From the NCBI GenBank assembly GCA_964199315.1, contig OZ116704.1, forward strand, positions 11,842,001-11,906,000: a stretch of DNA of 64,000 bases, in the 5' to 3' direction. Of this stretch, positions 689-61,434 are shown in pieces; position 1 is the first letter of the stretch, and the number at the start of each line of letters is the position of its first letter. The DNA comes from Orbicella franksi (taxonomy: Eukaryota). Made by a program: the position numbers and the translations under genes. The notes below the pieces were generated by a model, which searched no databases, was not told the DNA's origin, and saw nothing but the letters and a program-made list of their open reading frames with translations.

Positions 689-2914
689 TTGACGGATTTT
701 CTCCATTCGAGCAATCAATGTCGTCTGTAAAGAAATAAAAAGGAAACTATGCTTGAGCGCCAAATTTATCACAAACCCGAGGGAAAACAGCAGTGTACTA
801 ATGAATGACTAAATAACAGCAAGTTCCCAAACAAACTTGGTGGAAGATATTCAAGTAGATATGGACATAGGGCTTTTGTCTCGTGTGCTGTTTTTGCAGC
901 AGTAATCCGTGTGTACTTTAGATTCCGCTTGATCCTCTGGACTTGCTAAGAAAAACTCTAATTTTATACACGGTGTTGTCCAAGTCAGCCAGAATCCAGG
1001 GGATTAATTAAAAAATGCCCATACGCGTGGAGAGGTGTAAAGGCCATTAAATACATCTATAATTGCCTGCATTACCCTTACCACTGGAGAGTAAGGATGG
1101 CCCAGTGGTGAGAGCAGTCGCCACCCACCAATGTGTTCCTGGTTCGACACATGTGGGTTGAGTTTGTTGTTGGTTCTCGCCTTGCCCTGAGGGTTTTCGG
1201 GTTCTCCGGTTTTCCTCCATCCACAAAAACCAACATTGCCAAATTCGAATTCGATCAGGTCAGAGGACTCGCACGAAAACCAGCTCTATTAGGCTGATGT
1301 GGCTTCCTCTCTAAATATAATTTAGAAATGGTATGGTATTTATTTACCAGGGTCAGTTGGCTTGAATGCGATTTGTAGCTTGTCATTCACCGTGAAGACA
1401 GATGACACCATTTGGAGAAAAGCAAAATTTCCACTGCTAAAAAGTTTAAGCGAGCCACTTGCACAGGGGCCATACTTCCCAATCAGAGGACTTCTGGCTC
1501 CAGCACCATCACGGATTATTAAATAGTCATCGACCCCAGTTAGCTTCAGTTCCTTGATCGTGATTTCCAGTCGGAAATTTTCTGGTGCTTGTATTTTCCA
1601 CCTACAGGAAGTGTCGTGTGAGCCATCCGGGAATTCAGGTGTTGAGATTTCACCGGCCACCCGCGCGTCAATGACAATGTTTGTATTCGACGAAGAACAA
1701 ACTGGAACATAACCAAAAAGATGTGTTTCTAGATACATAGTAACCATTGTTTAATTGCGAACCCTTACAAAATCTCTCCAGGAAGCCCTTGGAGGGACCT
1801 GTTCAAGGATATGTAGCTGCATGATACTGCGAATTAATAAGAGGTTGCGCGAGAATAGTGTCCATTCTCGTCCCCAGTGCTACGCGTTTTTTGAAATGTC
1901 GTTGAAGGTTTCGCAGATCACGTGACCAAACCAAAACGAGGGTCTGGGAAAGAGAACGTGACCAGTGAGGGTCCAAAAACAATGTTATTCAAGTTAGCGA
2001 GTACATTAAAATAACTTGTTCTTCACAGTTGACTTATCTTTTGTCTTGACATGTTAGTATTGGCGAAGGTTAGCTCACTGAAAACTCCAGAACTGTCTTT
2101 GGCGCCATAAAGTGAATTATATCAGTAATTCCGGTACAATTTGCATGAGCATAATAAGTTTGACCCCTGTTGAGTGTTCTGCCTCAGGTCATAATTCAGT
2201 TGTTTGTGTTCACAGTGACTTTGTTTAGATGTGAATTAATTGAAGGATAAAAGACCTTTCCCAAACTTTTATCTATGAATGCATTGAATTGGTTTATGAC
2301 ATGTGGGTGGATTTAGATCAAAACACACGCCAACGAGATAAAACGAGTCGCCATTCAGAACAGATAAGCAAAAGTATCTCATGTGGTAGACAATTCTTAA
2401 CTGCCTCAAGGTTAATTCAGATAGATAGATTAGCCAGAATTAAGAATGCAAAGCGTGTTGACAGAATAACACTAACATGCTTTCAAAATTATTGTCTGTT
2501 TGAAAGTGTTTGTTCGGTTTTGGGTCTCAAGCATTTCCTCGTTTAAAAAATGAAAACTGCCGGGAATACCTGCCACTCTTTGGCATTTCCAATGTTGTTA
2601 GTCTGATGCGATAATGATTTGTGAAGTACATCTGCAAATTTTGAAAGAAGTTCGTCCTTTTGGCGTTTTTCAAAGCACCAAAAAGACAAATGTTGCTTTA
2701 TGTGTTTAAAGGTTAAAGATGTAAAGGAAATTGAAGGTCGACAATCTATGGCTAACTAACACTTCAGCTTGTACTATTAGCGTGAATAAATTTTCCCAAT
2801 ACACACAAGCGTATTTGGTATATCTTAAAATCCATACATACCTTCAATATTTGCTTCTGCTTGGGTTAAAAATGGCATAAAAAGAACACCGACGATGAGA
2901 AACTTTAGAAACAT
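689..2914 (-). CDS. Gene 1: 5' part of a CUB(-ZP) paralogue (signal peptide, CUB1, Cys micro-exon); continues beyond the left edge of the window
   Basis: Exons 2914-2842 (MFLKFLIVGVLFMPFLTQAEANIE, signal peptide, donor GTATGT), 1701-1348 (354 nt CUB: VCSSSNTNIVIDARVAGEISTPEFP...CRWKIQAP...DYLIIRDG...GPCASG, donor GTAAAT) and 724-689 (36 nt, DDIDCSNGENPS, donor GTAAGT). All junctions are phase 1 with AG/GT ends. The CUB exon has the same length as, and is clearly paralogous to, gene A exon 17407-17054. The ZP domain is inferred by paralogy only. Confidence 0.8.
1090..1322 (+). mobile_element. tRNA-derived SINE
   Basis: A-box-like TGGCCCAGTGG and B-box-like GGTTCGA, followed by a non-tRNA body (GTGGGTTGAGTTTGTTGTTGGTTCTCG...AAAACCAACATT) and an AT-rich tail. 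No complete cloverleaf. Confidence 0.65.
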
Positions 2915-9086: not shown

Positions 9087-12000
9087 CTAAGAATCATCTG
9101 AAATGATAAGGGTTTCTTCCTTTCTTGTGGATTTGCGGCTTTGGCTGATGATGATTACAGCAATGATGAGCCCGATGGCAACAGTCCCCAGCACTCCGAC
9201 CACCACTCCTACAATTATGACCATGCTGTCGGTGGACTCTGACCCAGAATCGTTGTGTTCCTTAGCTGTGGAGAGCAAAACGGACGTTTTATCAACTCGG
9301 ATCATAAGTTGACAAGTGAAGATAGTGCAAGTGCAGCCAACCCTCTGTTTTGAATCCAGTTAATCGTGGTCCGGCCAAAAATAAACATTTCACTGTGAAT
9401 AATAAGCCATCGCTCAACAGACAGAGGCTACATTTTGTAACCCCTATATCAAGACACAAGGTTTGTTTATAATGTTCGAATGCCTAGTATCAAAATAAGA
9501 CTTCCTTCTACCACCAAGGCTACAGATGACCAATTTCACACAAGCAGCGCGGGATATCCCCCTGCACAAGGAATTTGTAACCTCCCTTTTATGAGCTAGT
9601 TCAGGTCATAAATAGGGTATAGGGAAAATCGTAGATTGTGTTCTTAAATAGGATAAGGGTTTTTGCAAGCGGACCTCAAACCCTGCCCAATTTTTCTGGG
9701 AGTGCCCCCACCCCGTCCCCCGGTTTGTGACTAAGAGTAACAGCAAATAAATTAATTAGAGTATGGAAAAATTGAATTCGCAAATTACTTCATCAGATTC
9801 CAAGGCTTAGCAACCCCCTCCCAGGGACTCGACGAAATAATAACAACCAAACTATCCGATGCTTTAATTTTAAAATAAATTAAAACTGGTTCTCACCACG
9901 TTAGTATAGTTCGTCGCTCGCTGACTTCGCGCAACCCCAATAATACACTGGTATAATAGCTTATGACGAAACCATTTTTGATTTAAGTCGGACCAATTTT
10001 TATATATCAATATAAGCTTCATGAAATGAAGAAACTTTTTAGGTAAATTAGGCAGCTTTTTTAATGGTATGTTAAGCTTTAAGTGTCAACGTGTCATCGG
10101 GAAAAAAACTTACCATCCTCGTTGCCAGTCATGAACTTGGACTTTAAAGGTCCAACATACAAATCAGCACTCATATCTTCCTCGGTTGATCTCCTTCTCC
10201 TCCTGTTCTCGCCACATCCCCTGTCGCATCGTGATCCAGCGTCATCTGTGCGGCAAACCGTCAACTTGCAGTGGATGTACACATCATCTTGCCTTTCTTC
10301 GAAGCGAAAAGCGGCAAGATTGAAAAACTGCTCGGCTTTTTTTTCGTACTGGTATTCCAAGGTGTTATCCCGCGAGCAACTGGAGAATGGAACACAGCAA
10401 TATAAAAATTAAAATTATCCATCTCAAACAATGTATGGGGCATGGATAGGTCTATCATAGCCATGAAAAATGGTTTCACAGAAAGAAAAAGAAAAACACA
10501 AGGTTAAATTACCTATAATGGAGTAATAAGATGAAGTAACAGAAGAAATTGATGCGACCTTATATTTTGTGGGTTACCGCCTAGCAACATTCTTTCAACT
10601 TTACCCACAAACCCTGTGCATATGGAGTTTTTCTTCTCTATTTATCTTTTATCTCTTCGAAAACAAGAAGTCGATCCTGCACTTTGTAGCCTTTTTGTTC
10701 GAATAATGGACACCAAAGAAAGAATATTGCTAATCAGATTTACCTCTCGTGAAATTTCCTCTGCAGTTCTTATCAGTGTGTCAAGTGCGGCCGAAATTTA
10801 AGACGTATTGTATAAAACAATGATTTGGTCATACACCCCCCAGAGGTCATATATTTGTTTAATATGCTATCTATAGCAATAGTAACTTACGCGTCTTCAA
10901 TGATAAGATGGACGGGAGTGGAATCGAAGCTCGACGATGCTGTGGCTTTGCAGACATCCGGGAACACAACCAATTCCGAGTCACCAGACTCCACTCGGAA
11001 ACCAAAGTACATCCTCTGACCCAGACCAACCGCCTTTGGAAATTCAGTAAGGGTGACATTGTTGTTTTCATCCTCGTACATGTCCATGAAATAGGTAAAG
11101 TTCCCAAATCTGTCTGGAAAAGGAAGAAAAAGAATACTTTAAAACAATTACTTGCAGGTCTCCAAGAACAGATGGTATTCTTCAGATAACGTATTAAAAT
11201 GCTTTAGAGCGCACAATAGGTCTGCAGGTTATTCGCCAAGCATTTTCCATAAATTTAGTTCATCGTTCCAGATAGTTAAAAAATAGAATATTTCATTAAT
11301 ACAGGCTGACACCTTGACGGGATTCGAACCCATGACTTCCCAGATTCTGGTCGCCAGCGGGCGTTGGGTACTGAGCTACGAAGAGATTCATGTCGAACTA
11401 GGCTAGACCATTTACCAGGTTCACATGTGACAGTCCTCCTGCATACCGCTAGGATAGGTAATTTTGTCGAAAGTCGCGTTAAGTGTCGAAATAAAAAAAG
11501 AAGATTTAATGGTAAATCCAGACAATGTTTCTCGAGAGCATGGATTTGAAACTCTATTTACCAAGTTACCTGCGTCTGTAATGACAAGCGTAGACCTTGG
11601 ACTGTAAGACACTTTGGAGATTACAGCCTTCTTGTCGTACCCACACTTAAACGGTATAATTTCCGTGTGCACACGAGTAATTACTTCATCATCAGCCGGC
11701 TGACCCGCTTTAAGGTAAACCTTGTTCGTGTAAAAAATCTTCTCGCCATCGTCTTCTTGTTTAGTCATGCAGGCTTCAAGTCCAAAAGTGAACTTAATCA
11801 TGTTCTCGTCCTTATAGCTGGCAACACAAGCCTTGTCTTCAAGGTGAAGGACAGAGTCGTTGATGGCAAGGCCAGGGAAGTCTGAAATCTGTAAAGATAC
11901 CTCGATGTAGTCAGGTCGGCAATCGACTTGTATTTCTGTAAGTCAAACGAAAAAGACCACGGTTAAGGGAAGATAGAAATTGTAACCAACGAATAATCAT

Positions 12001-15000
12001 TTTCGCAGCTCCAATAATTCACCTACTAAAAGTGGAATCTATGTTATAAAGATTAACAGTCGTTTAGAGAGAAGGGTAAAAAAGAAAGTAGCGGATTCAA
12101 AAATCGTCCTGGTAATTCTGCTGACCAGTGACACAAAGGCGCGCTATATAAGGAAGTCTTCCCTGGAAAGACGAAGGCTCATTTGTCAGTCACCGTTGAC
12201 CTGCGAGGGTCAAATTCAAAATGGCGGGCGATTTGAATACACGAAATGTAAGCTGTAAGTGAATTAAATTGCCTTTGGTGTCTCTACTTGTCTCTGTTTC
12301 AAGGAATCATGTTTTCAAGAGGATTATAAACTGATATTGTTCTGATGTCTACGCGAATAATTGTTCTACAATTGGACCCGGCTAATTCGAACCGTTTATT
12401 TCGAATTCCCCGTTATTTGGAACTCAAAACTATTTGCCTTGGTTTTGCTCTTCAGTTATTTACTATGGACTATTTCTAATTCCTATTTTTTCGAGCAATT
12501 TTTCGTTTCCCCTGCGAGTTGGAAATAGCGGGGTTCACATTTGTAATGTCAAGTCCGATCCCAGTGGGTATTGTAGAATACTGTCAGAGCGTGAAGCAAG
12601 CATTTTGTGGGTGAATTCAAAATTAGGGGGAGAAGCTTATGCTCTTTTATAACGCGCCTTCGTGTTTAAGCTAACCCAGGATAAGCGAGATTTTTTATTT
12701 GAGTCTTGTAACTTGATAACCATGATAATCATGAGAAAATCAACTCATGGGTATCCTTTCCTTTCCTATATGAGTATGGGGCTCCACTTGGCGGCCCTTC
12801 GGGCGGCCGGAGCTCGAAGCATGGAAAATAACTAAACGAGTCGAGTCAATTTACTGCGACTTACTTGCTTCAGAATCCAGTGTTATGTTTCCGCCATCGT
12901 AGCCCTCAGGAACTGAAAACCAAAACACAACCAATCAAAAAACGCGTGGATCACTTGAGGTAAATCAGGCAGCTTCTCATAGTAAGCTTTTTATGTTTGG
13001 CATTTTGTATCGCACATGAGACCTATATGAATCGAAATGAGGGCATATGAGGGAGAAATATTTCGGGAATTCGTGTTGTTGTTGTATTGTTGCTGTTTTC
13101 TGATGGAGATGAAAAGTATATTTTAAAGAACTATCCAGCCATGTCTAAACACATAATCAATCTTTTATCTGCCGAGAATGCATGACAGATCCATATTTGT
13201 CCCTAGATGGTCGATAATAACCATATTGTTGGATAGTAATTGAAAAAGGGCGTGTTTTATCCACTAAACTGCTCTCAGTAACTGCTATCGTTGTGTCGTT
13301 ATGTCGAGGAAACAATGTAAGTCTCCAGTTTTGGTGGCTTTTAATACTAGTAGACCAGAACACCACGATCCTATACTACATACGACGATAGTAAAGGTCA
13401 TATTTATTTGCGCCAAAATAACCAAACGTTAACTAAAACGTTACCTAGGAAACCGCGCGTAATGCCTGTAATGAGTATGTTAACTCGCGGTAAAATGAAA
13501 ACACATTGCAAGGCTATCAAAATTACTGCTGTAACATTCTTCAGACAGTCTATCAGACAATCAGTGTGTTAGACAGTATGTCAGACTGTACTGTCAATCA
13601 GCAAGCCAGCCAGTCAGACAGTCAGACTATCAGTGAACTAGCCAGGCAGTCAGACAGTCGACTGTCAGTCAGCCAGTAAATCATACAGACAGTCAGACAG
13701 TCATACCGCCAGACAGTCGGACAGTCAGACCGACAGACAGTCAGACCGTCATACCGTCAGACCGTCAGACAGTCACACAGTCAGACAGTCAGAAAGTCAG
13801 CCAGTCAGAAGGTAAAATTAAAAACTACTGTTTTGCTGAGCACAAGTTTTATTACTACCTGGGGGAGTTTTGACCTCTTGCCTCCATGATTTACAACGAA
13901 AAAAGTTGAGTAAAAGAGGCTGACACACTTACTTGGACTCGGAGCTTTACAGACTTGCCCTTGAGCATTGAAACCAAGTGGACCAGTATTCGCTTGAGGG
14001 CAATTGGTTTTAACTGCAGGGCATTCTTCAGGAGCTAAGAAGAGAGTAAAGAAAAAGAGACAAAATTAGACTACTTTTAAGACGACTTCGTGACGAACCT
14101 AGGGGGGGGGGGGGGGGGGAGGAGTATACCTTGGAATTATTTTTTGCGAGAGCTTCCAGCCTCATTCTCTGAATCACGAGTACATCTCAGATCAAGTGCC
14201 ACATTTTTTTGTAGCAGTTTTCAGACCTGTCGTTTCCATTGGCACATTTACGAGTTCGCCAACTACTTTTCCTTATCACTTTTGAAGTCTACTCCACACC
14301 CAATAAATTTTAGACTATAAAGGCATACATGTACGGTCACTGTAGAGCACACGGGGTGGACTTAACCGCCATGTTTTTACAAACAAGAAACAATAGGAGG
14401 ATATGTATTCATATTCTCTCCTCAGTTGCTTTGAATTAATTCCGAATATGAACCTAAATCAATGCCACTTCCCGTAACAACTTACGACATTTTCCTGTAC
14501 GCTCAAGGCTAAATAGCTAAATGTAGTGAGGTACTCTCGCCAGCGGTAGGACGAGAAATTTGCTTTCATGAGGAAGGGGCCCTATACATCTTGAACAATT
14601 ATCATGCGTGGACAGTTCTCACGCGGAAAAGTGCGTGGTAAGAGTCGACAGTGTGGACCTCCTGTCCAAGTGGAGATGATAAATCATACAAGGCTAAAAA
14701 GTACGTGCGCAGCAGTTTTTTCGCGTGTAACCCTTCTTCACTGTGACGTTTAGTCTAACATGTCACTCATGATGTGAGTTTCTTGCTCGTATGCCCCTAC
14801 TGGTGATCACATATTTTATCTAAATATTCTATTTTATTAGTTAGATAAGTTCGATTGTGAACAGATATAAGAATCGCATGTTTCAATTTGCCCCGCAAAG
14901 AGTTTCAGCTGCGGTGGTTAACCGTGTTATTTTCATACGTTTAAGACCATTTCTCTCAGGCAATGAATTTACTAACTGTTGCGTTACAGATAATAGCATA

Positions 15001-18000
15001 TCACAACATATAGTGTAACCCTTCCCCAAATGACTTTTTAAGATGGTTACCATAGTTCAGTTAATTACATACATGAGTGTCTTGTAATATTCTTGCCTAA
15101 CAATTAGGAAATATTTCTATCGTGTTCTACTCTAAAAAAAAAAAAGAACAGAACCTCACCGAGAGCTTTATACGTTGCATAGAAACCAGGCCAGTTGTTT
15201 TTTCTGTAGGCGCTAAACCTCAGGAACATCTCATTCTCGAAAGAAGCAAATGAATATAACTCCTTGCATCCGCACAGGACTTTAACATCATTCGTGATGT
15301 TTCCACGACGCTCGCTGATGGTGATGCTGTCATCCCCACAGCTCCCTTGACGGGAATATCGATGATCTTCAATACCAAGAAACTGGATTGCGAATTGCAC
15401 GCGATGCCCTCGAGGGGCTATGATTGTCCATAAACACGTTTCGTCAGCGTTGTAGTTGTTCGGAAAGTTTGGGCTTGTTAGCACTCCTGATAGTCGTCTT
15501 AGCTCGATGTTCACGCCACAGAGACCTGGAATTTTATCGCAAAAAATAGAAACTACTACCTCATGAACTTCTTATATATTGCCCGTTGTGTTTAGTTAAG
15601 CGTTCAATGAATTTTATAAAGGACTATGTACTAAGACTGTTTGAGGCAAACCATAAAAAAAATATCGAGATATTTCCCCTTAATTTTTTAATTAGCAAAT
15701 AAGATTTTCTGGCACATTTTCCCCTCGATTATTGTGACCTCCAAGAAAGTAAAAAGTAAAAGATTATAAAGGAAATAGGAAGGACCACGTTACCCAGGCA
15801 TTTTACAAGAAGTGATGACAAATTACAGCTCTTGACTGGTGTAATTGGATACTCAAACAATCAATAGTGTATTAGTAATAATAGTGTAGTAGCCTAATAT
15901 GGCTAACTGCTCGAGGTCACGTGATCACACGTTCTTGTGTTTTTTTTAATTCCACACACATAATGGGGTTGTCACTTTGCATGCAAACGCTCCAAAGTTG
16001 GCGAACCATGAGACATACTCAGATCAGTGTTGCAATTATGAATGAATCAAGGTAGAAACTTACTTGGTTGGGGTGTGCATTCAATTTCGCCTGTAGAAGA
16101 AAGCAAACACAAGATTACTTGCGCTTTAAATAACAGAATAATCAATATAGTTAGCAAAGTAGACAGAAGCGGAATTGGTGAGAAGAAATTTAAAGATATG
16201 TTAATAGTTTTAATAGAGATTTCCTCGCTTTGTTTGTTCAGCTCATTCGCTTTGGTAAAATCGCAAATTTCTTTTAAGGTTAATTATTGTTTCGAATAAA
16301 TGATTAGACTTTTTTTATGGCAGCTTCGCAAAATCTATATATTAGATACGTAAACAAGTGGATGAATATTAAATTTAACTGACTGACTAACCGACCGACC
16401 CACCGACTGACTGACACACTGACTGACTCTCTAATGCACTGATTGTCTGACTGTGTGACGGTGTGACTGTCTGACTAGCAGACTGGCTAGCTAGCTCACT
16501 GATAGTCTACCTGACTGTCTGACTGTCTGACGGGCTGGCTTACTAACTGACAGTATGACTGTCTGACTGGCTGGCTGGCTGACTGACAGTCTGACTGTCT
16601 GACTAGCTCACTGATAGTCTGACTGTCTGACTGGCTGGCTTGCCGACTGACTGATTGAATGACTGTCTGACTGTCTGACCGTCTGACTGGCTAGCTCACT
16701 GATAGTCTGACTGTCTGACTGGCTGGCTTGCTGACTGACAGTCTGACAGACTGTCTAACACACTGACTGTCTAACACTCTGACCGTCTGATTGTCTGACT
16801 GGCTGGCTAGCTCACTGATAGTTTGACTGTCTGAGTATCTGACTGTCTGACTGTCTGACTGTCTGACTGTCTGACTATCTGGCTGTCTGACTGTCTGACT
16901 GACTGATTAACTGCCTGCCTGCCTAAGTGATTAGCTGACTGGCGCATTAAAACGGACAGAAAACCAGACAGGCAGACTTTGTTTTGGGTCAACTCTTCCC
17001 TCAGTAAGAAATTGCTATTAAGCTGGCACCAAGTAGCAACCTTGCACTCTTACCAGGATCAATCGGCCTATACGCAATTTTAAGCTCGTCATTCACGCTG
17101 AAAACAGCAATCACCGTTTGAAGGAGAACTGTGCTTCCGCTGGAGAACAGCTTAAGAGAGCCAATCACACACGAACCATACTTGCCAATCACAGGACTTG
17201 AGGTATCAGCACCGTCACGGATCATCAAATAGTCATCCTGCCCGTTTAGTTTCAGCGAGTTGATCGTAATCTCGAGCTGGAAATTTTCTTGCGCCTGGAT
17301 TATCCAGATGCAGGAACTGTCAGTAGAGCCATTCGGGAATACTGGCGTGGAGATTTCACCAGGGACCTGAGCGTCAATGGCAATATTGGTATTCGAGGGA
17401 GAACAGACTGGAAAAAGATTAGCAAATGCCCTGTCATTGCAACTTCTGTATTTGAGGATGAAGCCTTAGGCCTTGTAACCAGTGGTCATAGCATACCTCA
17501 AGTGCTTTAACTGTAAGTCAGTTATATTGTTCCCGGTGGTTCTATGCATGCGTGACGTGTGTAGCGGATGAATGAAACTTATTGCGTGACTATTCAAATG
17601 ATAGCTATTGAGAGACATGTTGTCTGATCGTCAGTCTGACCTGCTTTACAATATTCTATCACGTGTAATTTGTACTTTTGCTCAGGACAACAAATCAGTC
17701 AAATCATATTCTGAAGGTCTTCATTACCAACCGAAATAACAGGACTGGATATGTTATTGCACTTTTGGCGCCTAAACATCGACCTAATTAATAAGAAAAT
17801 TAACTATTTCTACGTTTTTCTGCTGAGAGGAAGGTCGAGCAGAACTCTAGTCCAAGGCATTGTAAGTTATGCCTCAAGTCAAAGTCCAATTGTTTATGAT
17901 CAATTTGAGTCTGTTTACTTGTAAAATACTGTAACAGTATCATGAGTGGCCCTTTCCACATTTGACACGATTTGAGCAAAACATACACCACGTTATAACA

Positions 18001-25200: not shown

Positions 25201-25731
25201 TCAAGGTGAAGGACAGAGTCGTTCACAATAAGACCTGGATAGTCTGACAATTGGAGTGATACCTCAATGTAGTCAGCCATGCAAACAACGTCTATTTCTG
25301 GAAGGAAAAAAAAAGAGGAGTTAGGGGGATAAAAGCACTAATGTATCACTGCATGTAAGAAACAAAATTACTTGATGAACCCATCCATTATTTTATTTCT
25401 CTTAGTTAGCCAGCCAGTGACATCATTCTCAGTCTTTTGGCTTTATAAGCAAGTCAGCACTTGTAACCTATTTGTTCCTTACGTTTGGCAAGTAATCATT
25501 TAATAGTCTCTTTTTGTTTCTTGTTGTCGTTGTTTGATTTTCTATATCATATTCGGCCTTCATCAAATGAGGACTTCTTTAAATTTTTCTGTTGTGATTA
25601 AACTTCAATTTCTTGAAAATTAAGTCTAATTGACTCAGGCAAAACGTTGCCGAATGTTAAAAGCTGAACACTGTTCCCAAACTCACTATTATCAACATAT
25701 AGCTCTTTTCAGGAGGCGCCGCTAAAAATTT

Positions 25732-25775
<44 letters not shown>

Positions 25776-29542: not shown

Positions 29543-29581
<39 letters not shown>

Positions 29582-38000: not shown

Positions 38001-38316
38001 AAGTCACGAAAGGCAGAATCATTTTACCATTTAAGTACGCTAGCTGTAACATAGGTTTCTTTTTTTTTCCGATGCCGACGACATTTTTGGATTTCCATTT
38101 CATTTTCGCAACTGTCAACCAGATCTGCGCTAATATCTTACGGGGGATTGTCCCTGGACACGATGACGTCATTCTCATTGCTGATGCAACTTGAGTGGGA
38201 ACTCGGCAATAGTACACCAAATAAATAAGAGGGACCGGTTGTTCGTGACCAACAACGAATGTTTCTCTACGGCAGCTTAAGATTTTAGCTGTATTTTTTT
38301 ATGAAGAGTTGTTGAA

Positions 38317-50046: not shown

Positions 50047-53000
50047 ATGTTTCAACTGCTTCTGGGAATCGTGATTTTATTTCATCTCGTGTCCACCTCC
50101 ACATCAGGTTAGCAAACGATTTAAACTGCAAAATTTCATATGTATCGCTTCATATTGGCCGTTGTATTGTGTAGCAACTCGCGAGATAGACAGTTGAATT
50201 GCCAACTATCTATAAAGTAAAACGTGCAAAGTTTCGTTTATATCCCCTAAGAAATCTCAGTTGTTTGAGTTTAGTGAGAGTTACTTAAATAACGAAGCAC
50301 TAAGAATTTCAAACCCTTAGAACAACCAGGGATTCTTCGATTATTATTTTTTTAAGCCAACGATTATGTTTAACATATCAGTGACCATTATGACAACACT
50401 CCTTGTCTGTTTGTCGCGGTGACTGCGTTCGAATAAAGAGTGCCGTTATCTGAACACAAAACGAGTACATACAATTAGTGTGCATTGGCGACATGGGTTT
50501 AAGTTAAAAGACTGAAAGTGTTGCAAAACACATCGAATATTTAAATCAAAACAATAGTTTGAACGACTCCAAAATAACTGCGTGGATCACTCTTTTTATT
50601 ATTAATAGCTGTGCTCGAAGCTATCGAGATTTTCGCACCCTAGCGTGATGCAAAGCCTCATTACAGTGAAGCCCCTTGAAAAATAGCTACATACACCGCT
50701 TTCCACTTGGCATACATACAAAACTCGGACAGATGTTACGATTTCCTGTAGCATTTTTGATAGCTGAACGAATATTTGTCACTGATCCACGACTTATATA
50801 ATTAAGACATAAATTTGGCACAGCCCAGTATTCTGTCTGTTTGGCTGTCTGGCATAATGTATTTCACAGAGTTCATTCGCCATTTTCAATAGAGGACCAT
50901 AGAGGAGTGTTGTTGTACTTATTGCAATAAAACTATTCGGAAATAGGAACGAAGATGATATGTTGGTTGACCTTGGATGTCTGAAGAACGGAAGCATTTT
51001 TTAAGCTCATTTCGTCACCCAATTCACTTCTCGCTATCAACAATAAATCGTGCGTTTAGGATCAAGAATCTGACCTGAGTTATAACAGTTCTCCTCGGTT
51101 AATTACGAAAAGTAGTTTGTTTAAAATGTGTGAAAATTCCAAACACTCCCCTATGCAAAAAGCATCTTCAACAAAGCTTTTGTTTGTCATTTTGTCAGTA
51201 ACATTATTTACCTTGAAGCGAGATGTAACACAGAGAGTGCTTTATGGCATTGTGTACTTTGTTTGCCGTTGATTTTTTTATGTACATATACCTTGTGTGA
51301 GCATTGGAAGAATGTTTTACTTGAAATATTTACAATTTTTCTATTGCAACAATAGGAATATTCACATGGAAGAAGGGTTCCAACAAATTAACATAACTTT
51401 AGTACGTGGCGACGAGTTGAAGTCAAGATCAGGCCTGACCTGGTGTCTTATAATGCTTATTCACTGATCGACTTTGTAAAGCACCTTGGCCAAAGAACGT
51501 CATATGAAAAACTGACTCCTGTAAAGGATGTTTGCAATATTATTAAATCGAACAAAGATTAATTATTAATAAACGATTGACACTTCAAAATAGTTTTATT
51601 GGGGGAGGGGATGGGATACGGCTGTTGACGCTCTCGTGTGCGTAATATGAATTTCACCATATATATCCAGTATTTCACATTTCAAAATAATTTTTTATTA
51701 TCTTGAGGACGAAGGCCGATATTCTCCGCTTTGGTTCGATAAAGCTTAGTTCGTAATCAGTGATTTATTACAGAAGAAAGTTCACCTGGTCTAGTTCTAA
51801 GAGAATATTGGACCAACCTAAAGAGTTCTGATTGGATGAAGGACCCTTTACCTGAGGCCCGTCTTAGACGTGTAATTAATATTATTACCTTTTTGTTTGG
51901 GTTCAGTACTACGTTTAAAATGACAAAACTTTACAAGAGTATTCCTGGGCTTGAAGTAAACATGGCTACATGTTTACTTCAAGCCACGCTTTTGGCTACA
52001 AAAATGATTAGATTTTCGATGTTTCTCGTTACAAATTAAGCTACCTGTGCTCAATTCTAATTCCATGTCATCAAATATTGATTAGATGTCTCTTGCGTAT
52101 GGAGCTGCTGTGCGTAACAGAATTACGCTAGCTAATAAATCAATGTAAACTCATAATGCTTTAACAAAGGCACTCAACATTCGAACATTTACAATAAATA
52201 TCACACCACTGGTGTAAACTTCTGAGAAGTTTCTTCTTCAAACACGAAAGTAAAATGTCACACATCAATGATCCAGCAAAATTTTGTTTGACTTTGATTT
52301 CTTACGAGGCAATTACCTCCCCACCATGTGGCAAAGACCTCATCAAAGATAAGATAAACACGACCGATCTCTACGTGTGAAAACATTACATCTAAGGTTA
52401 ATTCTGACAAGACGATTAACCTGTCAAGAAACCAATCACGCGGTGTAAATGATAAATTGTCGTCTTAAACGGCGGCTGGTTTTAGCATGTCTGAAAAAGA
52501 ACTTGTTTCCACTGAAATCTACTGAATTCAGAGCGTTAAAAGATGGCGACCTCAAAAGCGAACAGAGATACCTCAGTTAAAATTCAACCTGTAAGATATC
52601 CGACAAAATTCCAAATTTTCAGGCTTTTCCTTCTATAGAAATAAACTGTAAATATTTCATTTCCGACAAGAGAAAATGAGAAAATCCCTCATTTTCTCAG
52701 TCTTGATTTCCGATTATCAGGCGTCGTACAAAACGTGTATGCCATGACGCCTTTAATTTATAGTTCAGGCTACTTATTTCATGGGGATAGTTTCATGATT
52801 TAAGCCGTTTTCTTCACGAACGTTTTCTCTGCTAGTTTTCTTTGTTTGTGTGTTTGTTGTTTTGTTGTTGCTGATGTTTCTGGAGTGAAGTGAAAAAAGT
52901 TTCAGTCAGTACATGTCAACATCTCTTCCAGATCTTGATCCATGCGTTTCATACAAAGAACTACGAGATTCCAACCGCTCTCAATTCCACAGCATATCTG

Positions 53001-56000
53001 GCTTAGACCTCGTTCAGTGCGACAAAAAATTAGTTCTGGACTGGTATAGATTTAAAGGAGGAGCTGGACTAAAAATGCCGGATTCGTGCGTCAAATCTGG
53101 CCACTGCGGTACGCATTCCCCGGGTTGGTTCCAAGGGTCCCATCCGACGAAGGTTGGTGATATTTCCATCGGGAGAATTTGCTTCAATTTTATGGGCTCG
53201 TGTTGTCAGTGGTACACGGCTACTAAGGTGAAAAAGTGCAGTGGTTTTTACGTCTATCAACTACCTTCAACCCCTTACTGTGATCTTCAGTACTGTGGGG
53301 ATGGTGCTACAGGTGGGAATATCTTACTTGGATGTACAATAATTATAATAGAGCAGTTTTTCCCGTAAGTGACGAAAGTAATTGGCATTTGCCTTGTTTT
53401 TGCCTCACCACGTTACACGATTGGTTTAATAATGTCGCGCCCCTTTGTCATCCAATCAGAAGTAAAACCAAAACCATTAATGACTCGCTCGCGCATGTTA
53501 TCCTGCGCCTCGCATCAGTAACCTGTATTTACTTCGAGTTTTGATTGGTCCATGTGATTACCTGCATCCTTTGTGATTGGCCAGAGTGATTACTTTGGTT
53601 TTGATTTGAAAACTGCTCGAAGTCAATACTTTCATGTTGGTCTTTCATAGCAGCTTAGACTGCTGTTATGACTGCATTAAGTCCCAAGCGTCTCCCCACC
53701 TTCCCCGAAGCCCGTCACAACAAAAGGAACAAAGTACCCTGGATAAACTGTAAGTTGTGACTGGTGACAGAATTAGTGTGTTCGCACTAGCCACGCATGG
53801 GTATCCAGGTTACCTCGTTTTCCTAACGGAGTGGAGGGCTTCCAAAACAAATTTCCAGGGTTATTATTGTGCCTTTTATGGGTTACTATTCATGGCTTGG
53901 CAGCCCTTCGGGTGCCTGAAATTAACACCTTTGCAATTTTATCCCCCACCCCTCCACAAAAAAACCGCCAGAAATCGCCCCGTTGTTTGAAATAACAAAT
54001 AACACCGCAAAAAAAAAAAAAAAAAACCTACTGCACCCACAAATTGCATGAATTCCACCCCTCCTGGCCGTACCGCTTCTTCCGCACCTAATTTTTACCC
54101 ATCTCTCAAACTTTTTCTATGACTAGATCTTGATTGTGCAGCTGATAACAACAACGTTACTATTAATGGATCGACCCTAGGCTCCTTGTCAAGTCCAGAT
54201 TTTCCCCGTCAGTATCCCAACAACTTTCAGTGCACTTGGCGTATAATGGCGCCCGCGGGCATGAAAGTAAAACTGGTGTTAAAGAACATGACACTGGGTC
54301 CTAATGATTATATAATGTTCCGCGATGGAGTACGTGACGATAGCCCATTGATCGCCAAATATGCCAACTGTGCATCGGGTGAGATTCGGCTCTATTCTAC
54401 AGATCAGTATCTTCTCGTGAACTTCGTCTCGGATTCAAGTGAACCTGGTAACGGCTTCCAACTGGATTACGAGACTGTCGAGTCAAGTAAGGAGACTAAA
54501 CGAATTCGTTATATTATATATTTTAGTCTTCTTCAAATTGAAAACTTATGTTTGACTTGTGCAAGGCATCCATGCACGTATGTTCTCGCCATTTACCAGA
54601 AGTTTAGTGTTCACTGTATGCGAATGAATTTCCAATAAAATGTTCTGGATGTTTGTTGTATGCGGCCCTTAGCAACAAATAATCGAATTCAGTAAAACGA
54701 ATTTCGAAATAACGATTCTATAAAACACAAATTTTCGTTTAACCGTAAGTTTTAAACGATTATGTACTATAACTCACACAAACTTAGAACTGAATCTAGA
54801 CTGAGCACGAATTAAAATTGGGATGTACGTTAAAGACCAAAACATGACAATATCTCCGAGTCTTTTCAGATCAATTTGATTTTTGCACTCTACATTTGTT
54901 CGTTTCTCTCGCGAGATCGTTTACGGTATTATTAAACTATTTTTTCCTCTTTCAGGTAAAGTTCGCTGTTCGCAGGACAAAGGTGAGATTAGCTAAACAA
55001 TCAGTACATTCGTAGAATTCTTATAAGATTAAATTTGGAAATACAGTTGACAATAAAGATTAGCGAAAAAACTGAGCAACGACGTTTCGGTGTCATCCTG
55101 GCACCATTTTCAAGTTAAAAAATATTTGTGCGAAAAGTAAACTAATTTATACCAATGGTAGAGGTGCGAAATTGAATAAATTAAGATTAAGATAGCTGTT
55201 CAATGTTCATGTTCATTCCAATGAGGTGTCAAACACTGGTAATGAGTTCAGTGTCTGTTCAAAGCCTAAACAAATACTTTTGCGCGAATGGAGTCTGACT
55301 GTGTGTTAAGGCTCGGTTTCTTCTTGCGAATCCACAACATTTCGTGGATCAAGCAATCGAACTTTCCCTGACATTTCTTTAGGATCTTAAATTCGTAGAA
55401 TTGAATTTTAATTCATTTTTTCCCATGTATTCAGATCAGACCTTCACTGATACGAATTTTTGAATTATGCTCGTTGTAAGAATACACCAGCTACGTTGTC
55501 TTTGTAACACACTAAAAGAAAGAAAATATAAAGTAGTTATCGTTTTCTTCCTCTCCCTGGTTATCTAAAACTTAGGTAACTCTTTAACTTGTAGATAAAA
55601 ATGTATTGTTTCTTGATCCTTATTTTGTGAATACTTAACATTTTCCTCACGATGCTGGACTGTAATGCGAGTAAACAAAATCGGAACTTTCAGTAGCAAG
55701 TATTTAGTTCAGGGTGATATTGTGGCTTTATCTGTAATTTCAGCGATCTTTAATGTAATCAAGCCAACAACAAAATGGAGTTTTCGAAAATAACGATTAT
55801 TTGAAGCAATTTTTTTTGCTGCCTTGAACAAAAATTTGGGAGGAATATATTGATTCACCTCAATTTTCAGTTCTCCTATGTGGTTTGAAAAATCGGGATA
55901 CCACTCTACATCAAAGCTATTGTTTTCTCTGTTTCTCTATACATTTTAGATATTTGTTCACCTAGTAGTGATATTAAAAGCTTGTCTGGAAACATGCGCA

Positions 56001-59000
56001 GCCCTGCATTACCGAAAAGTCCATCCGGGAACTCGGGCTGCCGTTGGAATCTCGATTTCCCAGTTGGCTACAAAACGTTGGTCGAATTTTCCTGGTTTGG
56101 AATGGCAGGGATAGGAAGTCAAAGGTGATATGAAACTTAGAACAGTTATGAAGAAGGAATCCGCCACAAGTTCGAGTAACAAGTGGACAAAAACTTTGTA
56201 TCAAGATTACATCTTATTGCAAACTTCTGTGCGACTGTTTTAAGTATCTTCTCAAAAGAAATAATTTCTAACAACACCAGATGTCAAAAACCAATGTTGA
56301 AGTTCATATGCCGAACACTTGAAAGTACTGGTGAAATGAAACTGATGATCAGTTTTTGTGTTTGAATAATTTTTCTGAACTTTAGAATTTATTTTCTCCA
56401 CCTCCCATGGGAAATTGTTTTGGTGTTATCACTGGCAACTGTTTATATCTTTAGCTTTTAGAAAATGCAAAAAGGCTGTAATATACTTAAAGTTTTTCTG
56501 GTACAAGGTTTTTGTCCATTTAAAACTGAAATAGCTCTATCGGATTTCGTCATAACGTTTTTCATTGTAGCAATCGGAATCATCGCCAACTTCAGGTGAT
56601 ATATCAAACTCGAGACAGTATCTCATCGCATTTCCAAACATGGAAAAGAGCGTTGAATTAACGGAGTACAGCGGAGGTTTTGGACGAGTTTGGAGGGTGT
56701 TGGTAATGTGGTGAAACACTCTCGCTATAGTTTTATGAATTTTTTAAACCGACAGCGAGAATGCTAACTGGGAACACATTTCCTAGCCTGCGAGCAGGCT
56801 CACTTGAGTCGCGCGCGAGCGGCGAAGTGCAAATCGATCCGGCGGGTAGGAGTCTGGTGAAGAGGCGCCAAGAAAGTAAGCCTGCCTTGATCTCTGTATT
56901 TTTTTTCATTTCTGCTTCGCCTGGGCGAAGTGAAATACCATTGGTCGAAATGCGGGAAAGGCGAGAAAACTGTCAATCTATTATGTTTGATGAGGAGCGC
57001 TTAGATCCCCACGGAGTCGGTAATTTACCGCACGTTCTCACAGTAAAAAAAAGTCGTCCACATTTGGATTCAAAAGAGAAACATTTGCAGAGATCAGAGC
57101 AGGCTCACTTTCTCGTCTCGCGTCTTCGACGATCGCTTTCGCGCTCGCGGTTACGCCGCGCGCGCTTGTGCTCCAACTTGAGCCTACTCGCAGGGTACAC
57201 ATTTCCAAACAAAGTCACAGCTATGGGATAGGTTTGTCTAATGACTTCTTAATAAATGTCCCTGTGTGAACATCTATAGAGAGTTATCGAAAGAATCAGT
57301 TACAAGGCTTTGCATTCTTGAAATGCGACTTACGAGCAAAACAACGTACTTAGTTAGTTCTTTCAAATATTTAGTTCTATTTCTCTTTTTTACTTCTACC
57401 ATCGAGAAGTCCGATTGGAAGCGGTTGACTTCCTAGATAATTAATGCTAGTGTTACTTATAATTAACTATAAATTGTTCCAAAAGTGACTGATATATTTT
57501 CAGCCACTGTGCCAATGATTTTGTTACCTTTGGTATGGATGGCGAGAAACAATCAAACACATACTGTGGTTGCAAGCTACCTTCAAAGCGACTTTATGAC
57601 CGTGAAAAGGTCTTTGTGACTTTTAACAACTCCCAAGCAGCAAACCAAGCTGGATTCCTGCTTCATTATAGAGCCGTTGGTAAGAAATGTGTCTAACGTT
57701 TATGATATCTTAATTGTAATTGTAATGGCCGACACTGAACGGTAAATTCACAAATTCACAAGGTCTTCGTTTGAAGGATTTAAAACACTCCTCCAAGAGG
57801 GAATAGTGAAGAATAACAGAGTGTATTAATGTCAGCATAGGTCTCAGAGTGGCCCAGTAACACAATTGAACTAATTTTATTTTATTCTTTTACTTGTGAT
57901 AGCCGCTGATGAATGCACAGACGGAGTTGATTCTTGTGAAATAAAAATGAACCCTGTGGGAATGAACAAAGATGGAGATCTATGTTACGGTAAGTAATAA
58001 ATTGATACAATTGCTGTGAGAGTTGTTGTATCTTCCACTTTGATCGAGTGCGGAGCTGGCGGTTATCAAAATCAGTTTCTTAGTGACCAAAATTGTGCGA
58101 TGACGACATGGAAACCTTTCAGGCATTCTTTTATCCTATTAATTGCGTCAAATTTGTATAATAACAAAGTATAAAAAGAGACTACTGACCACTAGTTCAC
58201 CTGATTTGAAGGGTAATACAGTCGCACCTCCCCACTACCAGCCCCCACCCACCTTTGGCGCAGTGGAAAATGGCCGTTGTAGAGAGGTGACCGTTAAGTT
58301 CTACGGTATCTCCTATTCGACGTTGTCACCCAATCCATTTGCTCTAGTCCCTTGTTCCTGTTTCTTGTTCAAAAGGAGAAAAATTAAACCATAACTGTCT
58401 CTACCGCAGTGTAGAGACCGAGGTGTCTAAAATTTGCTGGAGAATAAAGCAGTTCTGCAAAACTAATGACAATAGTTCTGGTAATTACCTCGTTGTCTTT
58501 GGCCTAATTCAGAGTCTACGAAGCCCACTACAACTTCACCGCCACAGACAACTGCAACAGCAGCAAAAACCAAGCAAGGTAGTTGTTTAGTGTGATTTAA
58601 CCACTATAACATATGCGACCAACACCTCTCTGGTACTTAAGCAAGCCTATCGGCTCAGTTCTAAAAGTTCAGCCATCTAAAACGAACAGAGTACTGAAAT
58701 GGGCTTAGCATTAGGTATATACGATATTGCGTTTATTGCAATTCTTAAATACAGGCTGAAATTAGCTTATCTACTTAAAGAAGATATTAATCTCAGCAAA
58801 AGCACCCGCCATTATTTTCCGACAGATGCTTCGCCTTCTTCGATATCTAAAACCACTTGACATGTTATTTCCTGTGCTCTCAGCAGATGACTTCGACGTG
58901 GACGTTAAATGCGATACGAATAAGATAAATGTCGTATTGCACATCAAGAGCCCTCTACACCACGACCCCGAAAGCGTTCACCTTAACGACGTCTCTTGCA

Positions 59001-61434
59001 AGCCATACTTCCAAAACGACAGTCATATATTTATCACATCGACTCTAGACGCATGCGGAATGACATGGAATCTTTCAGCTGACGGCAAGATGATCGTATA
59101 CAGCAACGCCATAACTGCTCTTGTACGCACTCAGAAGACACTGGGTTTGCACGCCACGCGAGATCACCAAGCAGTGTTCGAGTTTCAGTGCCGTTACAAA
59201 AGAAGGGCGGTTTTATCGATGGTATCATTCGACCCGTCCAAAATATTTGTCGTCACTGATATAGGTTAGTGAGGAATGTTAAAATATTTTGCATGTAAAC
59301 AATGGCAAACAATATAGAGAATGTTCAAGTCTGAGATTAAGGACACGCTGAGGACTTTAAGCAGTTCTTAGCTTTGGTTTTTTTTTGTCACAATACATAT
59401 TAAATTTCTTCTTTTCGCAATTTCTGTACCAGTGTTTAGCTTCATCTTTTGGTTTGTCGGTCTGTCTGTCTGTCCGTCTCTTTGTGTGCCTGCTTGATCG
59501 TTTAACTTTATAAAATGTGCTTTCTTTCGAATTATTTAGAGTTGTGTATTTGATTTCTAGTGTCTAAACATCGTGAAACGACAGGTTTTAATATGTCGAC
59601 GATTCTAAGCCACCCTATCATACGATTGGACGTTATAGCGGAGCTCCGGCGGCCCGAAGGGCCGCCAAGCGGTAAGCGCCAAGCGCCAAGTTAACGTGTG
59701 AGAAATTAACTTCCGGCTGTTTTCTGTCTGCTAATTAACTTTTACAAGAACGTTGCATAGTTTTATATTAGCGAAGCTCCAGCGGCCCGAAGGGCCGCTA
59801 AAGGGAGCCCCATACTCATATAGGAAAGAAAAGGAAACCCATGAGTTGATTTTCTCATGGTTATCACGGCTAACGGTATTGCTCGTGGGCGCGTACGCAC
59901 GACGGCGACGACGACGACGACGACGGAGTCACGCAAAATGGCCGTACTCCAAATAATAGGTTGACAGAGACATGCAGCCTTGGTTTACCGTGTACTTAAT
60001 TTGGCTCTGAACTACCCGGCCCAGGAACTACGTATTTAGGCTGGCCTAAATATATATATTTCCAGCTGTTAATATTGCAACCGTTTTTCGTTTTATCCTT
60101 TTCAGAGGCGTTTGGAAACTTCACGTTTGAGATGAACATGTTCAAAAGCGAAAACTTCAATGAGTATTACACGGAGTACCCAGTTGGACCAATAGACATC
60201 GGAACAGATATTTTCCTTCAGGTTTCAGTGACATCCAGGGATGCAGGACTTGTTGTGTTTGTGGATGAGTGTAAAGCCACTCCAACATCTGAATATCATG
60301 ATCAGATGCAGTTCATCTTTTTAGAGGATGGGTTAGTGACAATTATGTAATATATCAAACACGAAAGACCGTGTTTGACCAAATTTCCAAACACCGAGAT
60401 GAGAGTTAAAATACGACGCGCAGTGGAGTTCTCTGTGTCTGGAAATGTGGTCTATCACGGTCTTGAGTGTTGGATTTACCTTTTCAATCGAAACTAAAAC
60501 TGAGGAAAAAACAGAAAAAAATCGTAAAAATCTAGGCTAATTAACATCAGATATCCAAAACTGTCTGCATTGAAATGCTTATATGTACATGACGCATTGT
60601 TTCTTTACTTATTGATTGATTTATAACTTCAATTCCATTTATGCAGGTGTGCAAAAGACAACGCCCTTCGTTTTAACTACACCTTGTCGCCTGTTCAGCG
60701 TTTGATTTTGAGCGCGTTTCGTTTCAACGCTGTCAAGTCGAAAGAAATCTTCCTTCATTGTCTGGTAAAGGCTTGTCTTCGTTCAGACCAGTCGTCTCGT
60801 TGTGCCAAGGGATGTCCATTTAGCAAAAGAAAAAAGCGAGAATCAGAAAACGAGATTGAACGATTTTTGGCGCTTGGACCAATAATTGTTTCGTCTAATC
60901 AACCCAGTGAGATTACAGGTATGGCCTAAGTGATCTCTCCTGCAATAGAATGCGAGCAGTCTCTCTTTTGCTCGAAAGAACGCAAGCCAACAGAGGCGAG
61001 CGTCGATGCCACGAATAGCGCGGGCATGGGAAGACGAGCGAAGAGAGACTCGGAGATCCTTTTTTCGCTCTTCGTCCGACGTCTGCGTTACTTACTTGAA
61101 TTGAAGCTCGCAGTTTCGCCTCTGCTCGTTCGTTTGCGTTCTTCCTTCGCGGATCTCCAAGCAAAAGAGACTGCTCGCAATCTAGCCTAGCAATTGTTTC
61201 ACATGTATATTCTTACTAGTTTTCCTCGTCTCCCTTCCTTATTACCTTGCAGAGTCCTTGACACCAAAAGAGAGCACCGCTGTAATTGGTGTCGTAGCAG
61301 GACTACTTGGGTTCGTCGCGTTGTTACTCTTGGCAGCTCTTGTGGCCGTTATTTACAAGCGTCGTAAGAAACCTGACGTTACTGGGGCCGTTACTCTACC
61401 TCTTGTGCGTGACAATGTGCCGGGTCCTGGCTGA
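50047..61434 (+). CDS. Gene D: uromodulin/GP2-like D8C(D10C)-CUB-CUB-ZP transmembrane protein, about 797 aa, 12 exons
   Basis: Exons 50047-50107 (MFQLLLGIVILFHLVSTSTS, signal), 52932-53312 (10-Cys domain DPC...WYRFKGGAGLKMPDSC...CGTHSPGW...YVYQL...CDLQYC), 54127-54486 (CUB1), 54956-54982 (27 nt, SKVRCSQDK), 55950-56124 and 57504-57679 (CUB2, YCGCK), 57903-57989 (3-Cys module), 58513-58578 (Thr-rich), 58884-59264 (ZP-N, NAGNAG acceptor), 60106-60331 and 60647-60918 (ZP-C, furin RKKR, patch LALGPI), 61253-61434 (TM, TGA). Total 2394 nt = 798 codons with consistent phases. Confidence 0.88.
55030..55410 (-). mobile_element. Penelope-like element, 5'-truncated, antisense in a gene D intron
   Basis: Translation QFYEFKILKKCQGKFDCLIHEMLWIRKKKPSLNTQSDSIRAKVFV* (about 55403-55266), a typical Penelope GIY-YIG C-terminus (recall), followed by a hammerhead-like motif. 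Confidence 0.82.
55077..55117 (-). ncRNA. Minimal type-I hammerhead ribozyme, U3-A8 variant
   Basis: UAAC-UUGAAAA-U-GGUGCCA-GGA-UGACACC-GAA-ACGU-C-GUUG. Core with U3/A8 covariation, stem II GGUG/CACC, palindromic ACGU stem III, GUC cleavage triplet and a 4-bp stem I. Confidence 0.6.
56784..57197. mobile_element. 414-bp MITE with a 9-bp target-site duplication
   Basis: 19-bp terminal inverted repeat TA(G/C)CCTGCGAG(C/T)AGGCTCA. Direct repeat CACATTTCC at 56775-56783 and 57198-57206. Confidence 0.9.
59630..59960 (+). mobile_element. Interspersed repeat with two GAA-triloop hairpins and an internal (GAC)n run (Helentron/HINE-like?)
   Basis: 8-bp stems GGCGGCCC-GAA-GGGCCGCC (59648-59666) and AGCGGCCC-GAA-GGGCCGCT (59781-59799), plus a CGACGACGA tract. 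A second copy fragment is at 12715-12815. The superfamily is inference. Confidence 0.55.
60946..61184. mobile_element. MITE with TAG-TGCGAG termini
   Basis: Terminal inverted repeat TAGA(A/T)TGCGAGCAGTCTCT..TTTGCT. The flanks CTCCTGCAA and GCCTAGCAA are only partly similar. Confidence 0.7.

Follow-up and report, generated by a model that had tools for sequence, protein, structure and literature searches.

The 64,000-nucleotide (nt) stretch of the Orbicella franksi genome analysed here (the window, G000:C7:11842001-11906000; genome ~497 Mb) contains four ZP genes, termed gene 1, A, B and D, all of which are complete in architecture once the part of gene 1 that lies left of the window is included. 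The locus is probably an old, conserved stony-coral cluster of four type-I membrane ZP precursors with shuffled N-terminal heads, in which gene B has two promoters and the ZP-C exons of A and B have undergone gene conversion. It offers a clean, datable example of ZP proteins gaining heads, and two of its apparent features are less expected, namely concerted evolution, limited to certain exons, of the polymerisation domains of differently headed neighbours, and a conserved nested promoter that would yield a headless subunit from a Calx-beta-ZP gene.

Architecture of the four ZP genes

Domains were called by a Pfam scan of exon-sized open frames, and splice junctions were read codon by codon. 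Genes 1, A and D comprise the following features in the window (the exons of B are given further below; aa, amino acids; CDS, coding sequence; TM, transmembrane).

689-2914, minus strand: in-window part of gene 1 (Pfam, exon reading, tblastn with Pocillopora P0145 and P0099)
2842-2914, minus strand: gene 1 signal-peptide exon MFLKFLIVGVLFMPFLTQAEANIE, found by homology
1348-1701, minus strand: gene 1 CUB1 exon (Pfam CUB at 1343-1750)
689-724, minus strand: gene 1 micro-exon, ending exactly at 689, the first position of the feature marked in the first-pass annotation
9087-18624, minus strand: gene A, 671 aa, CDS 2016 nt (Pfam; AG/GT at every junction; homology)
18540-18624, 17054-17407, 16064-16090, 15160-15525, 13933-14034, 12865-12912, 11570-11935, 10891-11113, 10114-10379 and 9087-9265, minus strand: exons of gene A
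52932-61434, plus strand: gene D, at least 733 aa (Pfam, exon reading, homology)
52932-53312, plus strand: D D8C exon (D8C_UMOD, PF23283, E 4.7e-14)
54142-54486, plus strand: D CUB1 exon (Pfam E 1.6e-17)
55950-56124 and 57504-57679, plus strand: D CUB2, split by an intron
58513-58578, plus strand: D Thr/Pro micro-exon
58884-59264, plus strand: D ZP-N exon (Pfam E 8.7e-14)
60106-60331 and 60647-60918, plus strand: D ZP-C exons, the second with KRKKR (Pfam)
61253-61434, plus strand: D TM exon

The ZP modules share a conserved layout. PF23344 and PF00100 exceed the cut-off in A, B and D and in full-length homologues, and the same holds for the ZP-N exon of gene 1 at C7:11835766-11836044 (58.6 bits), whose ZP-N and ZP-C exons align with those of ZP homologues. 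In an alignment of 13 homologues, ten Cys columns are invariant, four of them in ZP-N and six in a type-II ZP-C. A predicted furin-type site, read directly as RRRRR in A and B, RRHRR in gene 1 and KRKKR in D, is followed in all four genes by a hydrophobic patch (e.g. DLYVGPL, FLALGPIIV) and then by a TM helix. The intron phases are equally uniform, running 1,1,2,1 in 4/4 genes from the head-to-ZP-N boundary through ZP-N-to-ZP-C1 and ZP-C1-to-ZP-C2 to ZP-C2-to-TM. Phase-1 introns flank every head module on both sides in the four genes, and phase-2 introns occur only within ZP-C, within the Calx-beta domain and within the second CUB of D.

These observations bear out much of the first-pass annotation, which had ascribed the ZP-N, ZP-C, furin site, hydrophobic patch and TM order with phases 1,1,2,1 to A, B and D. 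Pfam and direct reading agree, and gene 1 can be added. Its claim that the heads differ also stands by Pfam, with CUB-CUB in A, Calx-beta in B and D8C-CUB-CUB in D (where it had written D10C), as does, from the splice sites, its placing of the head modules between phase-1 introns. Gene 1 had been described as showing a signal peptide, a CUB and a micro-exon so far, which is accurate for the window; left of it, on the same contig, the gene carries CUB2, a 4-Cys linker, a 242-aa Ser/Thr stalk, ZP-N, two ZP-C exons and TM, and is thus a complete fourth paralogue.

Gene A consists of a signal peptide, CUB, micro-exon, CUB, 4-Cys linker, micro-exon, ZP-N, ZP-C, furin site, hydrophobic patch and TM, and its five-exon head layout is common to gene 1. 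Pfam detects both CUB domains (E 7e-10 and 1e-18), ZP-N (E 3e-13) and the two ZP-C exons (E 3e-10 and 3e-8). Four further exons were added through transcript-derived homologues, namely the signal peptide, the 27-nt micro-exon between the CUBs, the 4-Cys 'APEECP' linker and the 48-nt micro-exon that precedes ZP-N and encodes IPEGYDGGNITLDSEA. The resulting CDS, with consistent splice sites throughout, places two CUB domains N-terminal to the ZP module in a single predicted polypeptide, which is collinear with the transcript-derived P0099 (671 aa, 75% identity), and the same chain is found in P0102. Gene D is collinear over its full length with Nematostella LOC5507923 (P0068; Pfam D8C-CUB-CUB-ZP; E 1e-154). 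A match to the Nematostella signal peptide just upstream of the D8C exon was rejected, because it reads across a stop codon and lacks an ATG.

Repeats were also observed in the introns of gene 1 and A. A 240-nt element in the gene 1 intron (window ~1080-1325) has >2000 candidate copies in the genome at ~78-83% identity and is probably a short interspersed nuclear element (SINE) or a miniature inverted-repeat transposable element (MITE). In A, degenerate short-period repeat blocks ('SQTVRQSD...') at window 13541-13820 and 16378-16943 are inverted relative to each other and enclose the micro-exon 16064-16090, the CUB2 exon and the linker exon, all three of phase 1-1; relatives of this repeat lie at window 40680-40860.

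A mosaic gene in a conserved cluster

The heads and ZP modules of these genes differ in their relationships. Gene A shares 69% (CUB1) and 74% (CUB2) aa identity with gene 1 in its head and 31-45% in its ZP module; compared with B, its head is unrelated and its ZP module is 79-90% identical. D stands apart from the other three genes, with 28-32% identity in CUB1 and 29-41% in the ZP module. Because A matches gene 1 in its head and B in its ZP module, an old shuffling event is recorded here, and rate differences cannot explain the mosaic, since in ortholog pairs the ZP module evolves no faster than the head (gene 1 and Pocillopora P0145, for example, are 65% identical in ZP). In a ZP-only tree, gene 1 pairs with P0145 and the A/B-type ZP modules form a clade, both at 100/100. 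By sequence comparison the ZP modules therefore represent three old lineages (A/B, gene 1 and D) with ~35% mutual identity, and A reads as a chimera in which a head block of the gene-1 type is joined, in phase-1 introns, to a B-type block of micro-exon, ZP and TM.

One tandem duplication, reaching from the B intron upstream of the micro-exon to the gene 1 intron downstream of the linker exon, both of phase 1, would create A. It is the simplest explanation, as a single such event, broken at phase-1 introns on both sides, would reproduce the order B, A, gene 1 and can explain a chimera long retained beside its parents. No similarity between the introns or intergenic regions of the paralogues was detectable by self-blastn, and the duplication breakpoints therefore cannot be mapped on the DNA.

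The same architectures recur in other anthozoans. CUB-CUB-ZP is also present in Desmophyllum, Oculina, Pocillopora and Stylophora, CUB-CUB-stalk-ZP in Pocillopora, Calx-ZP in Stylophora, Montipora and Desmophyllum, and D8C-CUB-CUB-ZP in Nematostella, while headless forms occur in several corals. Furthermore, Desmophyllum MU827336.1 carries on one strand a Calx-ZP gene, then a CUB-ZP gene (635 aa) and then another (1032 aa), which matches the order B, A, gene 1. The chimera would accordingly be older than the divergence of Orbicella from both Desmophyllum and the pocilloporids. RefSeq and transcript relatives with the architectures of B, gene 1 and A include XP_020602028.1, S. pistillata XP_022785063.1, P. 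damicornis XP_027049069.1 and Desmophyllum OS493_031076 and OS493_031083, and these are annotated merely as 'ZP domain-containing protein-like' or 'uncharacterized'.

A second Desmophyllum region contains a Calx-ZP gene, a headless ZP gene and a 565-aa adh_short short-chain dehydrogenase/reductase (SDR) gene (L009 18845-20542), which echoes the SDR open reading frame (ORF) beside B, and the SDR-ZP neighbourhood is conserved between coral families. In the window this intronless SDR ORF (565 aa, 38305-39999, plus strand, adh_short E 6e-19) adjoins B. The Desmophyllum annotation of MU827336.1 (285-299 kb) splits the Calx-ZP gene in two, one model of 233 aa with a garbled ZP-N start and one of 227 aa with ZP-C.

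Apparent concerted evolution of the ZP-C exons

The divergence between A and B is uneven along the genes. Synonymous divergence (dS), estimated over 57-125 codons per exon, is lowest in the two ZP-C exons (0.18 and 0.26), rises to 0.53 in ZP-N and reaches 0.89 in the TM exon. For comparison, the CUB exons of gene 1 and A differ by a dS of 0.76-1.04, and orthologous exons of Orbicella and Desmophyllum by 0.5-1.4. The ZP-C exons of A and B hence appear 'younger' than the species split, though both genes predate it. The trees of the two halves of the module also conflict: with ZP-C alone, A and B group with their nearest relatives (100/98), and with ZP-N alone, B falls with an Oculina headless protein. 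Within the A/B-type clade of the whole-ZP tree, sequences group by coral lineage and not by head. Taken together, the low ZP-C dS, the ortholog dS and the tree conflict favour gene conversion over repeated shuffling, and such a homogenisation of the A and B ZP-C exons is suggested with moderate confidence.

Two first exons and a proposed optional head in gene B

The features of gene B are listed below. RNA junctions were obtained from two polyA RNA-seq libraries with the same species label and cover the region 25100-31050.

22256-28157, minus strand: gene B headless isoform, 375 aa (RNA-seq junctions, P0097, Pfam)
28112-28157, minus strand: B SP2 signal-peptide exon MKAFIIFCASFCFTL, which carries the ATG
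27482-27529, minus strand: B micro-exon, 48 nt, GGKNITLDTEA
24932-25297, minus strand: B ZP-N exon (Pfam ZP-N E 1.6e-12)
24041-24263 and 23488-23750, minus strand: B ZP-C exons (Pfam)
22256-22437, minus strand: B TM exon
30085-35003, minus strand: B upstream alternative 5' block (RNA-seq junctions, Pfam, RefSeq match)
34952-35003, minus strand: B SP1 signal-peptide exon MMRFLILSLVVYMCSAQ (loose read ends at 31004 match 34955-34984)
30887-31001, minus strand: B Calx-beta exon 1 (Pfam, first half of the domain, E 0.005)
30085-30347, minus strand: B Calx-beta exon 2 (PF03160 E 3.8e-13)

The headless form is directly visible in the RNA, in which ZP-N is joined to the micro-exon (25297-to-27482; 104 and 30 reads in the two libraries) and the micro-exon to SP2 (27529-to-28112; 53 and 2 reads). 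In addition, P0097, a Logan transcript ORF on an assembled 1.9-kb contig, is 99.7% identical to headless B over all 375 residues. Within the upstream block, SP1 is spliced to Calx-beta exon 1 (38 and 22 reads) and this exon to Calx-beta exon 2 (30347-to-30887; 59 and 37 reads), and a few X24 reads (one library) splice SP1 straight to the B micro-exon. The acidic DDxxxExxE segment of the Calx-beta fold can be read directly in B, IIDDEADEGEESF, and PF03160 matches the whole Calx-beta domain of the Desmophyllum homologue at E 1.7e-20.

Both forms of the protein are found in relatives. The fused B model (503 aa) equals O. faveolata XP_020602028.1 save for one residue and an N-terminal extension. 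Assembled transcripts of a close relative contain a Calx-ZP form of 500 aa (P0130) and a headless form of 374 aa with the same ZP sequence, and those of Stylophora contain a 497-aa Calx-ZP and a 376-aa headless form, again with the same ZP sequence and with several independent contigs of each. The Calx-to-ZP junction falls at the identical codon in all fused relatives, with matching phases. Furthermore, Desmophyllum has an SP2-like exon MKVFALLCVSLYLAL between Calx2 and the micro-exon, with the donor TAG|GTATG as in SP2; no SP2-like relic exon was found in the A intron upstream of its micro-exon. Based on the RNA junctions, the presence of both forms in relatives and the SP2-like exon of Desmophyllum, B most plausibly has two promoters and a Calx-beta head that is optional, an arrangement kept in at least three robust-coral families. 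The inner first exon, SP2, would give rise to the headless ZP subunit, and the outer promoter at SP1 to Calx-beta-containing RNAs, which in other corals are joined to the same micro-exon and ZP exons. A direct splice from Calx2 to ZP-N was rejected as a candidate, as ZP-N is joined to the 48-nt micro-exon in every isoform observed.

A ~45-nt stretch of a B intron (window 29328-29376) also attracts RNA reads; these continue heterogeneously to either side and show three alternative bases at 29340, and the stretch is most likely a repeat common to many transcripts and not a B exon.

Alternative explanations

The first-pass annotation had viewed the locus as a plug-and-play kit that is diversifying now and locally, with heads swapped onto a single chassis in this lineage. 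The phase-1 introns at all module boundaries, the near-identical ZP modules of A and B beneath unrelated heads, and the grouping by coral lineage of ZP modules with different architectures would all be expected under such a scheme. The ZP modules of gene 1 and D, however, are only ~35% identical to those of A and B, so that there are three old lineages where one chassis had been supposed; the same three architectures sit on an A/B-type ZP in at least four other coral genera; Desmophyllum keeps the gene order; the introns of A and B have no detectable similarity; and the lineage grouping is mostly limited to ZP-C, where gene conversion explains it better. A kit diversifying locally at present is therefore very improbable and largely refuted, given the ancient fixed architectures that the ZP phylogeny and synteny indicate (the Desmophyllum order, the Nematostella D8C-CUB-CUB-ZP). 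What remains of the proposal is exon shuffling itself, which is real in the case of A (the head of gene 1 on the ZP of B), but neither local nor ongoing, as the architectures are shared with other genera. A related possibility is that each coral family duplicated the gene and captured heads independently, which would account for the grouping by lineage in place of gene conversion. In line with this, the ZP tree pairs headless with CUB proteins in Desmophyllum (91/84), Calx with CUB types in the pocilloporids (94/91) and A with B in the Orbicella lineage (95/97). Such a history is nevertheless improbable, for it needs the same three architectures, micro-exon, junction codons and gene order to have arisen repeatedly, and it is at odds with the five-fold variation in dS between adjacent exons of one gene pair and with the conflict between the ZP-N and ZP-C trees.

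For gene B, the Calx-beta exons could instead be a separate gene for a ~147-aa secreted protein that ends at a TAA, with polyadenylation just past 30085, in which case B would be purely headless and the fusions would be read-through or annotation artefacts. The donor at 30085 (GGG|GTCTGT, phase 1) is weak, with an in-frame TAA 6 nt beyond and an AATAAA at 30070-30075, and past 30085 the read coverage drops from ~50x to ~2x within ~20-30 nt. The junctions from SP1 to Calx1 and from Calx1 to Calx2 are both present, yet neither a junction nor a notable loose end marks 30085, and the coverage suggests that the Calx-beta RNAs in these samples seem to end mostly as a short Calx-only message. When the protein collection was searched with Calx exon 2, the hits were all unspliced ORFs of genomic type and none was a spliced Calx-only ORF, which bears neither way on a short Calx-only mRNA. 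A separate Calx gene is nonetheless judged unlikely, since full-length fused ORFs stand on 2-3 kb transcript contigs in Stylophora (several 497-aa members) and in the closer relative (P0130), RefSeq holds fusion models in O. faveolata, S. pistillata and Montipora, all fused relatives join at one codon with agreeing phases, and the outer promoter feeds the ZP exons, as seen in the X24 reads from SP1 to the micro-exon. Regarding the first-pass expectation that transcripts join the heads to the ZP exons, the RNA-seq on B yields mainly the headless form and no Calx-to-ZP junction, and the fused form is supplied by relatives and RefSeq.

Several points weigh against an old cluster with a chimeric A and a dual-promoter B. 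The junction from Calx exon 2 (donor 30085) to the micro-exon has 0 reads in the two polyA libraries, with both sides well covered, and the Calx-ZP fusion is putative in this species, backed by the RefSeq model. The exon chains of A and D are homology-based and not derived from reads of this genome, and no signal-peptide exon of D was found, either by homology or by a heuristic search that had also missed those of A and gene 1. The head-only tree is a basal polytomy that neither dates nor polarises the head duplication, so that the proposed direction and age of the chimera are inferences, and the dS estimates come from few codons. Finally, polymerisation, cleavage and any heteropolymer are deduced from family knowledge only.

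Likely mechanism and relation to known ZP proteins

ZP-module proteins are the building material of structures as varied as egg coats, the uromodulin mesh of urine, the tectorial membrane and the cuticle linings of insects. Their ZP modules polymerise into extracellular filaments after cleavage at the furin site frees the hydrophobic patch. The predicted precursors of the cluster start with a signal peptide and an N-terminal head, continue with a ZP-N/ZP-C module with 10 Cys, and end with a furin-type site, the external hydrophobic patch and the TM anchor. If they behave like uromodulin, GP2 and the ZP proteins of egg coats, cleavage at the furin-type site would free the patch. The ectodomains would then form filaments that show CUB-CUB (A), CUB-CUB with a mucin-like stalk (gene 1), D8C-CUB-CUB (D), and either Calx-beta or no head (B). 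An AlphaFold2 model of headless B (predicted local distance difference test, pLDDT, 68) has the strand after the furin site docked on ZP-C, and Foldseek matches it to the uromodulin polymerisation region 4WRN (E 1e-16) and also to UMOD, ZP3 and GP2 filaments.

A more tentative proposal, which is doubtful as it stands, is that the conversion of ZP-C might keep the polymerisation surfaces of A and B matched for mixed filaments, that the promoters of B might set the ratio of Calx-decorated to bare subunits and thereby tune, at the RNA level, the head density or Ca2+ capacity of the matrix, and that the weak donor 6 nt before a stop and poly(A) signal might switch between a free secreted and a filament-tethered Calx-beta protein. 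Roles of these genes in skeleton or mucus or as decoys, as put forward in the first-pass annotation, would likewise be hypothetical.

Among known proteins, vertebrate CUZD1 has the same order as A, with two CUB domains, a ZP module and a TM anchor, and is the second-best Swiss-Prot fold match to the ZP part, at 22-25% identity, which is a fold-level likeness only. A differs from it in the extra 4-Cys linker exon and in the GGNITLD micro-exon before ZP-N, and in that its head and ZP module have separate histories within corals. Gene D resembles uromodulin and GP2 in having a D8C ahead of the ZP module, a furin-type site and a hydrophobic patch. Unlike uromodulin, it has no EGF hits by Pfam, carries two CUBs between D8C and ZP, and ends in a TM helix with a cytoplasmic tail in place of a glycosylphosphatidylinositol (GPI) signal; its actual counterpart is Nematostella LOC5507923 rather than uromodulin or GP2.

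The headless SP2 isoform of B is similar in layout to the skeletal 'ZP domain-containing protein' of Acropora millepora, G8HTB6, which is also headless and consists of a signal peptide, ZP and TM. G8HTB6 is the top Swiss-Prot fold hit to B (E 8e-29), but its identity is only 29%, compared with ~60-65% for B-type orthologues in complex corals, and it therefore represents a different ZP lineage and not the B ortholog. ZP proteins are a core component of the coral skeletal organic matrix (PMC3748352, PMC4890752, PMC8382919). No paper describing a Calx-beta-ZP combination was found in the literature searched, in which it thus appears to be undescribed. The optional-head Calx-beta-ZP, its chimeric neighbour and the putative concerted evolution of single exons, on none of which a paper was found, add new details to a kind of protein that is already known; they leave the general picture of ZP biology unchanged and give concrete hypotheses on mixed filaments and head dosage in coral matrices.

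Other features of the window and of the ZP family

An assembly gap in the remainder of the window is located as follows.

41718-41897, no strand: assembly gap, intergenic, between the SDR ORF (ends 40002) and a G-protein-coupled receptor (GPCR) ORF (44480-45493)

No ZP, CUB or Calx matches were found by homology search at 40-44 kb of the window, and as no exon lies within or touches 41718-41897, the gap is irrelevant to the gene models. The repeat-rich stretch before it includes a near-perfect tandem repeat with a 56-nt period at window 40213-40603 (HSFIRSFV...), the copies of which are 93-97% identical. The GPCR ORF between B and D (window 44480-45493, minus strand) is a single-exon, rhodopsin-family frame of 338 aa (7tm_1 E 3e-40).

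Genome-wide, at least 48 ZP-N exons were detected, several of which lie within other tandem clusters, and the ZP family has thus been broadly expanded by tandem duplication in this coral. These other clusters of ZP-N exons are located at C1:20.47-20.85 Mb, C5:8.60-8.66 Mb, C5:30.5-30.6 Mb and C5:33.9-34.0 Mb.

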